Part shown: positions 34,331 to 37,871 of the stretch, one piece after another | Position numbering within the stretch: the first letter of the stretch is position 1 | Layout: every line of letters begins with the position of its first letter | Source: Chlorokybus atmophyticus | Lineage: Eukaryota; Plantae; Mesostigma and Chlorokybus algae | Length of the DNA stretch: 64,000 nt | NCBI GenBank assembly: GCA_009103225.1 | Contig: RHPI01002615.1 | Span: 256,328 to 320,327, forward strand | Direction of reading: 5' to 3' | The notes under the pieces: generated by a model | Databases searched by the model: none | Told to the model about the DNA's origin: nothing | The model's input: only the letters and a program-made list of their open reading frames with translations | Position numbers and translations under genes: made by a program

Positions 34331-35519
34331 ATGGACTACGGCCACGACGTGTACAACCACCACGACAATGCTGCCTCTCCCTCCATGACTCGTCAACGCC
34401 ACAGCCCCCCTCGCAGCCCTGAGGATCCACTCGAACCCCCCCACCCACAACAACCCCTACCCCAACATGACCCCTCCCCATCCCACCTGGACCGCGCCTG
34501 GACCCTCCACCCTTACGTCCACAAGCACGGCGTGTCTCCGACGGCGGAGCCGGAGGGCGACGAGAGCATGTGCCGCTGCTGCGGACACGAGTTCACCAAC
34601 CCGCTGGAGGACCCGAGGACGGATGAGATGTGCGGGGAGTTCACAATGCACGGTGAGGGGAGAGAGAGTGTGTGTGTGTGTGTGTGTGGGTGGGTGGGTG
34701 GGGTACTTGTGTCTGTGTTGGTGCGTGCGCGCGCACACTTGTGACACGCGCACGCGCACGCGCACGCGCACATGTGTGTACACGCACACCCGTGCGTATG
34801 CACATGCGCGTGTGCATGTATTTCTGTTTGTCTCTCACAGACTGACTTCGCATACATCATCACAACACTCACTCACGTTGGGACTCTCTCCCAGCCTTGC
34901 CTCGTGCGATGCGTATCGAAACAAGCCACCTGCGTCGCTGCCTGTGGCTCCTGGTGTTCCTTGCGGGCGCGGGCGGGTTCCTCGCGCTGGGCATCCTCCA
35001 GATTGAGAGTTACCTCAAGTTCAACACCAACATCAACGTCAACATCAACGACGTGTCGCAACAAGGGGGAGGACTGGAGTTCCCGTCGGTACGCGTGTAT
35101 TGTGTGTTGTTGTTGTGTTCGCACACCTGGCATATACGCACGCATGCGCACGCGCACGCACGCACACACGTGTATGTGGGCAGTGATTGCTATATGACAC
35201 AACCCACACTTACCACACCTTTTTTCTGTGAGCTTGCTTTCCTTTGCAGATCACTATTTGGAACGTCAACACTGTGAGGTGCGCACTTGTGTGTGTGTGC
35301 GCGCGTGCGTGCTGCGAATCCAACATGTACCGTACACAACAACGACAATAACAACAACAACTACTATACAGGAAGTCGACTGTGGTCGACACGCCTTACT
35401 TCGACGAGGTGTGTAGCATAGAGGCGGGTATCTTCGCCGACCGCAATGAGGGATTCCAACCGTACCCACTCAACTGGACGGACGATATGATATTCAGCGC
35501 AGCACATCAGTTCGAGAGG

Positions 35520-35557
<38 letters not shown>

Positions 35558-35867
35558 TGATGATTGTTGTTGATGTTGTTCTTGTTGTGTAGCGCGCTGG
35601 TGGGTTGCACCTTCAACGGCGCAAACTGTTCGACGGCTGACTTCTTCACCAGCCTGACGCCTTTCCCGTACGCACGCAGTGCTTTATGTTGACTTTGCAC
35701 ATGTGTGTGTGCACGTACGCGCATGTGTGCATGCGTGTGTGCACGCGTGCGGGTGCGAGATGTGCGAAGAGCATCCTGCACTGCATTGAGATGTGTGCGT
35801 GAGACACGCACACATAAACATCGCTGCTGTATGTCCTATAGTTGGCACCTTTACTGTTAGCCACTGA

Positions 35868-35924
<57 letters not shown>

Positions 35925-37871
35925 ACACACGCAGCGACAACCGCTTCGGCGTGGCTCACACCTTCAACATCTTCAGCAACATGACCACATTCATTCCTGG
36001 CCCAGACGGCGGTTTATTCCTCGCTCTGTCCATCGAGCAGGCAAGCCACTCACTTCAAACCCACACATGCCCCCAACATGCACAGATACATGTGGACTCG
36101 CTATTGAGTTGTGTCGGTGGCAATAGGATGAATACTGCCCGCGCACGTGGGGTTCGGGAATCTTCTTCGAGCTGCACAACCATCATGGACTGGAGGTACC
36201 CTTTGCGGTTGAACACATCATGGCTTCAAACCGACAGGTGGGTTGGGGAAATGCAACTGTGTGTGTGTGTGTGTGTGTGGTGCTCACACGGTCCTTGACA
36301 TGATAGATGCTCTCTAGTGGGAGGTGGTGGCAAGTGGCTATCACGCCAACGTTCCAGTTCTTTCTTGGCCCTCCCTACAGTAAGCGCATTGCTTGGTTTC
36401 CAAACAAAAAAGACTGTCACACCACGCACGCACACACACAATGCAGCACCCAACAGCACGTCCGCGTCACATGTGCGCGGTGCTTGGGCATAACGTCTTT
36501 CACACACAACAAATAGAGGGATTCCGTCCTCTATGTTGTTTTTGGGGCATTGTCATCCCCGACACCATGCGTGGTATATGCTAGTTGATACCACACCACA
36601 CCACATGCGTTCAACTCTGCTGCTGTTGTATGCTCTCTGCAGACGAGCCGTGTATCGACCTTGCAGCAGGACAGGTATGAGAGAGTTTTCACGAAGGTAG
36701 CTCAATGCTAGTCTCCTCTTTTGCACCCAACATGTGGCCCATATGTGTGTGCGTGTGCAGCTCCTCCCTCGCAAGAACTTGTCGCTGGAGTGCGCGTTGA
36801 CGTGCCCGGGCGTGAACGCGTTCCCGATACTCGCGCTGGAGAAGTTCGATCGACAGATGTTCCTCGACATAAGCAACGACACAGAGTGCATACTCAACTG
36901 CTTCAACCTTACTCTATACCAGTACGCTGGTTGCGTGCGCGCGCATGGGTATATGTGCGTGCGTGCGCATGCGTGTGCACCTAACAACTACAAAACGCCA
37001 AGTACTACCCCTTCCTTCATGTGTGCAGGCTTTGTGCCCCCACCCAGTTTGAGGTCGAGCTCGGTCAATTAGCCTTCCCCGTCCAGAACGCCATCCCACC
37101 CTTAATGATCCGTTGGCCCCAACTCTCTCTTGGGTTCGACCCTTTCAACATCACCGACGACCCCGCAGCGCTCCAGCAAGTCCTCCAGAACTTCCAGGAC
37201 AACCTCATCCTCGTGTACTTCTACTACAAGGACCTGAGCGCCGTGCAGCAGGAGGTGCAGACAAAGGCGTACACATTCGGAGCGCTCATATCGAATGTAA
37301 GTGGTGTGGTGTTGGTGTGCGTGTGCGTGTGTGCGCGTGCGTGTGTGTGTGTGAGCGGGCGTGCGGGTGGGCGCATGCACATGTATACGTGTGCTCATCA
37401 TGTTGCTTCTATGTGCAGATTGGTGGTCTTAGCGGCTTGTTCCTCGGCATGTCCGTCATAACCCTCATCGAAGCCGCTGAAATCCTCACCCTTTTGGGCC
37501 TGTTCTACTGGCACGACTACTCCACTAGCCGCCCACACCAACAGCGACCCGGCGGGTCCGGTCACCTCACGCCATCCACGCGAAGCTCAGGAGACAGAGA
37601 CAGAGACAGAGACAGAGACAGAGACAGGGACTTAATGATGAGAGACATGTCCAACTCGTCCAACTCGTCCAGCTTGTCCCACAAACCCACACCTCGCACG
37701 GCGTACGACAAGTATCTGCACAACGAGCGTAAGGCCAACGTCGCCATGACACAAGTCATACCGAGTGACAGTGTTGCTGGCAGTGCCAGGTTGACGGCCA
37801 CTGCCAGTAGCACAGGGGGCACATCACGCCTACCGTTCGCCATACCAGAAGATAACACCCACTCGGTGTGA
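34331..37871 (+). CDS. DEG/ENaC/ASIC-family ion channel subunit (~656 aa). Exons 34331-34652, 34895-35088, 35250-35278, 35372-35518, 35593-35667, 35935-36040, 36127-36237, 36307-36379, 36643-36674, 36761-36921, 37029-37296, 37419-37871
   Basis: The 12 exons sum to 1971 nt in one frame. Family motifs appear in the correct order: FTMHALPR...LRRCLWLLVFL (TM1), LEFPSITIWNVN, GCTFNGANCSTADF, FGVAHTFN, GLFLALSIEQDEY, GIFFELH, LGPPYNEPC, NLILVYFYYKDL..KAYTFGALISNIGGLSGLFLGMSVITLIE (TM2, GxS filter). Confidence 0.93.
35872..35922. repeat. (CT)n microsatellite in DEG/ENaC intron 5, serving as the polypyrimidine tract
   Basis: Read directly. It ends ~12 nt before the AG at 35933-35934. Confidence 0.9.

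Follow-up and report, generated by a model that had tools for sequence, protein, structure and literature searches.

A probable native DEG/ENaC-family channel gene in the streptophyte alga Chlorokybus atmophyticus

Introduction

DEG/ENaC-family channels are mainly metazoan, with scattered reports in unicellular eukaryotes (PMC10507113, PMC9822975). In published reviews and trees the family counts as an animal one; the few non-animal outliers, in heterokonts and in a filasterean relative, are disputed, and massive loss versus lateral transfer is debated as their explanation (PMC9822975, PMC10507113). Land plants are reported to be without the family in a survey of plant channels (PMC12806904), and a 2026 preprint names the corresponding Pfam domain (PF00858) among marine 'algal' protein domains, without comment. 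A first-pass annotation of a 64,000-nucleotide stretch of DNA (the window; GenBank assembly GCA_009103225.1, contig RHPI01002615.1, positions 256,328 to 320,327), made from the sequence alone, had reported a complete gene of this family in a green-algal genome, against a background that agrees with these papers. The host is indeed a green alga, the streptophyte Chlorokybus atmophyticus (Streptophyta, Chlorokybophyceae). Here we describe a computational analysis of this locus, from which we consider it highly probable that the locus is an intact, expressed gene native to the nuclear genome of C. atmophyticus, that it encodes one DEG/ENaC channel subunit of the ASIC/ENaC/FaNaC type, and that it has at least three diverged paralogues there.

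The closest described systems are ASIC1 (PDB 7cfs, 6ave), the FMRFamide-gated Na+ channel FaNaC (PDB 7yvb, 8on7) and the alpha, beta and gamma subunits of ENaC (PDB 6wth). Outside animals, homologues are described from the heterokont Cafeteria roenbergensis and the filasterean relative Tunicaraptor unikontum (PMC10507113); they resemble the Chlorokybus genes, by description only, in coming from single-celled or simple non-animal eukaryotes and in being patchy in distribution and functionally uncharacterised, and they belong to a supergroup other than Archaeplastida. Full-text searches of open papers, PMC10507113 included, turned up no description of Chlorokybus DEG/ENaC genes, or of the family in the green lineage. 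The Chlorokybus genes are new members, and a new lineage, of a known channel family and not a new kind of system. With several expressed and constrained DEG/ENaC genes in the streptophyte alga that diverged earliest, the family extends to a third supergroup, very distant from the others; this makes the question of family origin directly testable by phylogeny, and offers in Chlorokybus a simple organism for asking what a DEG/ENaC channel does outside an animal body.

Results

Similarity of the product to DEG/ENaC channels

Rebuilding the gene model from the raw sequence gave a spliced frame of 1971 nucleotides from 12 exons, encoding 656 amino acids followed by a TGA stop, which is exactly the length first proposed (Table 1). 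The introns are 69-267 nucleotides long; ten are of the GT-AG type and one, intron 6, is GC-AG. The product was searched as exon translations. Against the Pfam profile ASC (PF00858; 455 positions), exon 2 scored 21.3 bits (E=1.6e-4) over positions 13-68, while exon 12 scored 15.1 bits (E=0.012) over positions 434-454; the matches thus fall at opposite ends of the profile and in the expected order, and ASC was the sole Pfam family matched. Three further Chlorokybus proteins, P0121, P0122 and P0123 (jgi/Chlat1 Chrsp110S08634, Chrsp290S04339 and Chrsp290S04328, respectively), are 60, 44 and 40% identical to the window product from N- to C-terminus, with no insertion or deletion in the ectodomain, and the first two of these paralogues scored 120 and 142 bits against ASC.

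Comparison with proteins of solved structure pointed the same way. P0121 alone matched FaNaC (E=2.6e-19, its best single-sequence match) and ASIC1 (5.2e-19), and also ASIC2, ASIC5 and ENaC gamma and alpha, while a profile built from the three paralogues matched ASIC1 best (4.7e-27), then FaNaC (2.5e-26) and ENaC alpha, beta and gamma (1e-13 to 1e-15), with ASIC2 and ASIC5 also found. FaNaC was likewise the best match in the PDB for exon 12 of the window itself. The profile matches lie in three colinear blocks, comprising the His motif before the first transmembrane segment (TM1), TM1 itself and F-P-x-[IV]-T; the beta-ball block that ends in Y-T-F-N; and the last palm strands with the second transmembrane segment (TM2). 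Of the 100 clusters nearest to it in the ESM Atlas, 98 carried ASC. These results bear out the original assignment to the DEG/ENaC/ASIC family and support it, at family level, for the full gene.

ASIC1 shares the three colinear blocks (F-P-x-[IV]-T; T-F-N; I-G-G-x-x-G-L-F-x-G-x-S), two transmembrane segments and a small residue at the degenerin position, but the paralogue-profile matches to it are limited to these three short blocks, at about 30 bits each, and the window product differs in its long, presumably cytosolic tails (119 amino acids each) and its plant-lineage host. FaNaC has TM2 and the preceding strands in common with the window product, but the similarity is no greater than that to ASIC1, so that the product does not side with the FaNaC/ENaC clade in particular; we know of no neuropeptide system in the alga. 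ENaC belongs to the same family and resembles the window product in having a G/S-x-S filter and several diverged paralogues, which could form heteromers, but it is a weaker match than ASIC1; the window product has no P-P-x-Y motif in its tail, and no protease-cleaved inhibitory tract was identified in it.

The same overall topology is found in other trimeric channels with two transmembrane segments, PAC/TMEM206 and P2X, and the gene could in principle encode one of these. However, Pfam scans of the exon pieces and two paralogues returned ASC alone, save for a sub-threshold match to MavL (E=0.19) on P0122, and no match to TMEM206 (PF15122) or P2X (PF00864). Leaving aside chance matches of exon 11 described below, the PDB matches were exclusively to DEG/ENaC members and included no P2X chain, and TMEM206 appeared only at a template-modelling (TM) score of 0.25 in the Atlas structure list. 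We regard membership of either family as exceedingly improbable.

Topology and conserved motifs

Hydropathy analysis revealed exactly two hydrophobic segments, at about residues 120-146 and 507-537, in line with the two transmembrane helices originally read from the sequence. The 364 residues between them contain 10 cysteines and seven N-x-S/T sequons (residues 216, 242, 271, 369, 402, 412 and 457), the number that had been claimed. The predicted topology therefore has two transmembrane segments, with both termini presumably cytosolic. S-N-I-G-G precedes TM2, and its Ser505 occupies the degenerin position, where it aligns with the Gly of ASIC1 L-L-G-D-I-G-G and the Ala of FaNaC F-A-D-I-G-G. 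Residues 507-518 (I-G-G-L-S-G-L-F-L-G-M-S) align with I-G-G-Q-M-G-L-F-I-G-A-S of ASIC1 and I-G-G-T-L-G-L-W-M-G-I-S of FaNaC, and the putative G-M-S filter (residues 516-518), inside the second hydrophobic segment, coincides with the filters of both. The two pore features of the first-pass annotation, the G-M-S filter and a small serine at the degenerin site followed by N-I-G-G, were thus recovered.

On the N-terminal side, His107 aligns with ASIC1 T-L-H-G, and the next residue is Ala108, whereas Gly is usual at this place in the family; the His-Gly gating motif is highly conserved, though not universal, among its members. The ectodomain blocks F-P-S-I-T-I-W-N, C236-x6-C243 and G-V-A-H-T-F-N occur in that order and align with ASIC1 blocks; for exon 5, the block in the paralogue profile aligns with the ASIC1 block containing C-S-A-E-D-F. 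The spacing of C236-x6-C243 and of C196/C295 would fit that of two ASIC1 disulphides, and the 10 ectodomain cysteines compare with 14 in ASIC1.

Two features mark the C-terminal tail of 119 amino acids, a conserved D-K-Y-L-H motif and a run of (RD)n. The repeat, at about residues 565-578, is encoded by a (GACAGA)n microsatellite at 37588-37632 and is missing from all three paralogues; RNA contigs break on either side of the microsatellite.

Paralogues in Chlorokybus

An exhaustive phmmer search of 1.84 billion representative proteins with exon 11 returned two proteins, P0121 (62%) and P0122 (38%), and a word-index search of 5.8 billion proteins with P0121 or the three-sequence profile returned P0121-P0123 only. 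Neither search revealed a relative outside Chlorokybus, and two scans of JGI metagenome contigs gave pattern matches and no relative. The window's own product had no matching protein in the 5.8-billion collection (length range 337-1071 amino acids), and the locus may be without a full-length public gene model. EukProt/JGI is the sole source listed for the three paralogue matches, which may explain the omission of these genes from channel phylogenies. The identifier of P0121 comes from the scaffold of the window (Chrsp110), and the other two paralogues lie on another scaffold (Chrsp290).

All four copies have in common the motifs F-P-S-[IV]-T-I-W-N, Y-C-P-R-T-W-G, G-P-P-Y and D-C-F-N-L-T-L, and each has the tail motif D-K-Y-[LI] and a terminal Val. 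They differ at the filter, which is G-M-S in the window copy and P0121 and G-A-S in P0122 and P0123, and at the His motif, which is His-Gly in P0121 and His-Ala in the other three. The window copy is further distinguished from its paralogues by a longer tail, with the (RD)n repeat. Several departures from the rest of the family are specific to this lineage: the Cys that normally follows TM1 is W, C-Y-T-F-N has become A-[HY]-T-F-N, His-Gly has become His-Ala (three of the four copies), and the Asp before I-G-G is N. Since these are common to the paralogues, we interpret them as features of the lineage rather than as signs of decay.

Transcription, splicing and selection

Logan contigs of four public sequencing runs were aligned to positions 34000-38200. 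In one of these runs, an RNA library from 2021 (X1), a contig of 437 nucleotides (rec1) covers 34556-34650, 34894-35087 and 35370-35488, with five letters in all differing from the window, so that it represents essentially the same allele. Its length equals exactly that expected from exons 1-4 (97+194+29+117 nucleotides), which confirms introns 1-3 together with the 29-nucleotide micro-exon. A second X1 contig (499 nucleotides, rec3) joins 37029-37296 to 37419-37582 without mismatch, confirming intron 11, and others extend over the tail and into the 3' untranslated region (3'UTR) for about 270 nucleotides.

The middle of the gene is represented by a 780-nucleotide contig (rec17) from run X4, a different sample under the same organism code, which is about 92% identical to the window and links exons 2, (3), 4, 5, 6, 7 and 8 at the model boundaries. 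This contig crosses the GC-AG intron noted in the first-pass annotation, and its joint at 36235/36305 (cut +2) confirms the weak-looking acceptor 36307. Introns 4-7 are thereby confirmed on the transcript of a homologue at about 92% identity and not on the identical allele. The divergent form was absent from X1 and the identical form from X4. Because each sample holds one form, the X4 transcript is most simply read as the orthologue from another Chlorokybus strain or cryptic species, the alternative being a recent paralogue. The listing gives 34 codons at which this transcript departs from the window; the change is silent in 24 and alters the amino acid in 10, with a bias toward third positions. 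This excess of synonymous changes indicates that the channel gene is under purifying selection.

Weighing the assignment

Several observations weigh against an intact gene of this family. Taken singly, the exon pieces fall under the ASC cut-off of 23.6 bits (21.3 and 15.1 bits); the profile search that had been suggested for this locus gave colinear matches for exons 2 and 12, and scores well over the cut-off for P0121 and P0122. AlphaFold2 modelling of P0121 with the three-sequence alignment gave a predicted local distance difference test (pLDDT) value of 37.9 and a predicted TM-score (pTM) of 0.27, values too low to be used in a fold search or to confirm the fold independently. The motifs are also not entirely canonical. 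The family's blocks had been claimed to be complete and in order, and they are indeed present, ordered and aligned with ASIC1, but two usually conserved cysteines are replaced (the post-TM1 Cys by W, and that of C-Y-T-F-N by A-H-T-F-N) and the conserved His-Gly is His-Ala. The filter has an unusual middle residue, Met (G-M-S versus G-A-S in ASIC1), N replaces D before I-G-G, and the thumb-like region has six cysteines against ten in ASIC1.

No RNA contig in the four runs bridges introns 8-10, so that confirmation by RNA, as had been proposed, extends to introns 1-3 and 11 for the window allele and to introns 4-7 for the 92% homologue. Introns 8-10 are supported by the reading frame and by gap-free alignment to the three paralogues over those junctions. 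In addition, intron 8 (36380-36642) contains the whole of a 206-nucleotide contig from X1 (36398-36603), which has no mismatches and an exon-like depth. An Rfam scan of 34000-38200 found nothing in intron 8, and elsewhere gave sub-threshold matches of GT/CA repeats to repeat-derived microRNA families. We take the contig to be unspliced precursor or DNA carry-over; other options are intron retention and an unknown intronic RNA.

The altered residues (His-Ala, the post-TM1 W, A-H-T-F-N, the filter Met and several thumb cysteines) raise the possibility of a decaying or non-channel copy that is transcribed and forms no conducting pore, such as a silent or regulatory subunit. However, the frame of 656 amino acids is uninterrupted over 12 exons, the substitutions relative to the 92% homologue show the third-position bias and the 24 to 10 ratio described above, the TM2 motifs are intact, and most of the altered residues are common to the four paralogues and invariant among them, as would be the case for lineage features. 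We therefore consider a decayed copy improbable, and favour an intact gene for a channel subunit.

Evidence that the gene is native to Chlorokybus

The channel gene lies on a gap-free contig of about 7 kb between two runs of N, which also carries part of CDI, a plant-type glycosyltransferase gene. As had been stated, no N run separates the two genes; they are arranged tail to tail, with the CDI stop codon (38390-38392) 519 bp from that of the channel gene. In protein searches CDI matched eukprot jgi/Chlat1/1087/Chrsp110S01586 at 100% identity. The 119 matches ranked next, at 59-76%, comprise CDI glycosyltransferases of land plants (60-76%) and sequences without a name.

Two features could suggest that contamination or mis-assembly has joined a gene of animal or protist origin to algal DNA: the small size of the contig, about 7 kb between two scaffold gaps, and the composition of the introns. 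The first-pass annotation had described the gene as having the same intron style as its neighbourhood, and this proved incorrect: its introns contain 67 bases of (GT)n/(CA)n and 9.6 GCGCAC motifs per kb, versus at most 0.5 and 1.2, respectively, in the rest of the window. However, a GCGCAC-type repeat at 34745-34771 had a depth of 310-350 in a DNA run and must therefore be a common repeat of the Chlorokybus genome. When 31-mers were sampled over the junction between the two genes (37700-38800), 92% of them occurred in X1 and 46% in a DNA-type run of a different study, and an X1 contig covering 37700-38140 overlaps a contig of run X3 covering 38058-38200+. Stretches spanning exon and intron sequence of the channel gene also occur, with zero mismatches, in DNA-type runs of two additional studies. 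The codon usage of the channel gene matches that of CDI (GC content at third codon positions 0.74 versus 0.70; correlation of synonymous codon choice, r=0.80). Three paralogues are present in the Chlat1 proteome, one of them with an identifier from the same scaffold, and the protein and metagenome searches described above found no near relative in the data of other organisms that could have been the source of a contaminant. Contamination is very unlikely, because the adjacent CDI gene is identical to that of Chlat1 and otherwise matches land plants; the claim that the gene is native, and not a contaminant, is thus upheld by the CDI linkage, the junction words, the codon usage and the paralogue on the same scaffold.

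The repeat at 34745-34771 is partly transcribed, as its depth in an RNA run was 52.

Origin of the family in Chlorokybus

A gene that is native now may still have been acquired horizontally in the past; conceivable donors are animals, relatives of filastereans, heterokonts and protists not yet sampled. The lack of any relative outside Chlorokybus in the protein searches (1.84 and 5.8 billion) and the JGI metagenomes is compatible with this, as are the patchy non-metazoan distribution of the family, for which lateral transfer is openly discussed (PMC10507113), and its reported absence from land plants (PMC12806904). On the other hand, similarity to all solved animal channels is low and nearly equal (98 bits for ASIC1 of clade A and 96 bits for FaNaC of clade B), which argues against a recent or identifiable donor. 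The channel gene also contains 11 spliceosomal introns and uses codons much as its host does, and the paralogues, which number at least four and are spread over two scaffolds, are now only 40-60% identical, so any transfer must be old. We see acquisition by transfer as a serious possibility, albeit one with rather less than an even chance. If it occurred, it would have taken place long ago, with a donor that has not been sampled; inheritance by vertical descent, accompanied by massive loss, is just as possible.

In the case of vertical descent, the DEG/ENaC family would predate animals, having been present in a common ancestor of Archaeplastida and Opisthokonta; it would have been retained, and have expanded to at least four members, only in Chlorokybus, the deepest branch of the streptophytes, been lost before land plants arose, and serve in the alga as a set of stimulus-gated Na+/cation sensors. 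We put this forward tentatively, as a possible but on balance unlikely course of events. If true, such sensors would operate in a cell of plant type, walled and H+-energised, and no study of DEG/ENaC channels is known from that physiological setting.

Proposed function

By analogy with animal family members, three subunits would assemble around a central pore. In each, both the N-terminus and the C-terminal tail would be cytosolic, and TM1 and TM2 would flank an ectodomain of about 360 amino acids that carries glycans and disulphide bonds. TM2, with the G-M-S belt, would line the pore and set its selectivity, and the small Ser505 at the degenerin position would allow closure. The ectodomain would act as the sensor and couple an external stimulus to opening, candidates being a ligand, protons, and load of an osmotic or mechanical kind. 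The predicted channel is probably a voltage-independent, Na+-preferring cation conductance, which would depolarise the algal cell, and the paralogues may form heteromers.

Gene model and neighbouring features

The coordinates of the gene and of neighbouring features are collected in Table 1.

Table 1. Positions in the window of the channel gene, its exons and adjacent features.
Feature	Coordinates	Strand	Description
DEG/ENaC-family gene, whole coding region	34331..37871	+	12 exons, 656 amino acids, TGA stop 37869-37871
Exon 1	34331..34652	+	Putative cytosolic N-terminus, residues 1-107 + 1 nucleotide; ends in conserved pre-TM1 motif
Exon 2	34895..35088	+	TM1 (about 34930-35010) and post-TM1 F-P-S-I-T-I-W-N region
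Exon 3	35250..35278	+	29-nucleotide micro-exon
Exon 4	35372..35518	+	Ectodomain; RNA contigs X1 rec1, X4 rec17
Exon 5	35593..35667	+	Ectodomain, C236/C243 pair; X4 rec17
Exon 6	35935..36040	+	G-V-A-H-T-F-N block, counterpart of ASIC1 G-K-C-Y-T-F-N; then GC donor
Intron 6	36041..36126	+	GC-AG; joint 36038/36125 (movable by 3 nucleotides) in X4 rec17
Exon 7	36127..36237	+	Ectodomain, Y-C-P-R-T-W-G block, invariant in paralogues; X4 rec17
Exon 8	36307..36379	+	Ends in G-P-P-Y; acceptor 36307 seen in X4 rec17
Exon 9	36643..36674	+	32-nucleotide micro-exon; frame and gap-free alignment to P0121-P0123
Exon 10	36761..36921	+	Cys-containing, thumb-like region
Exon 11	37029..37296	+	Lower palm strands and pre-TM2 start; Ser505 = 37291-37293; X1 rec3
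Exon 12	37419..37871	+	TM2 37419-37511; putative G-M-S filter 37446-37454; 119-residue putative cytosolic tail
Scaffold gap, 205 N	32030..32234		Left bound of contig
Scaffold gap, 166 N	39230..39395		Right bound; inside (CT)n microsatellite in CDI intron
CDI, plant-type glycosyltransferase gene, last large exon	38393..39046	-	Convergent neighbour

The start codon at 34331 was chosen solely by alignment to the start of P0121. The frame of exon 1 is open upstream as far as 34163, with in-frame ATGs near 34211, and positions 34282-34422 are without a covering RNA contig in the four runs. An alternative model for exons 8 and 9, using the more obvious acceptor 36318 and extending exon 9 to 36696, was rejected, as the frame is lost and the RNA shows 36307 to be used.

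Exon 11 also gave weak PDB matches to light-harvesting proteins, which we judged to be due to chance, every stretch having an independent E-value above 30. They arise from the motif L-G-F-D-P-F-N-I-T-D-D-P (37120-37170), which resembles the repeated G-F-D-P-L motifs of light-harvesting proteins.

Beyond the right gap CDI continues to about 39767, its first coding part lying at about 39447-39767 on the reverse strand. The left gap is probably also located in low-complexity DNA. Between the two stop codons (37872-38392), the 3'UTRs of the channel gene and CDI probably abut or overlap.

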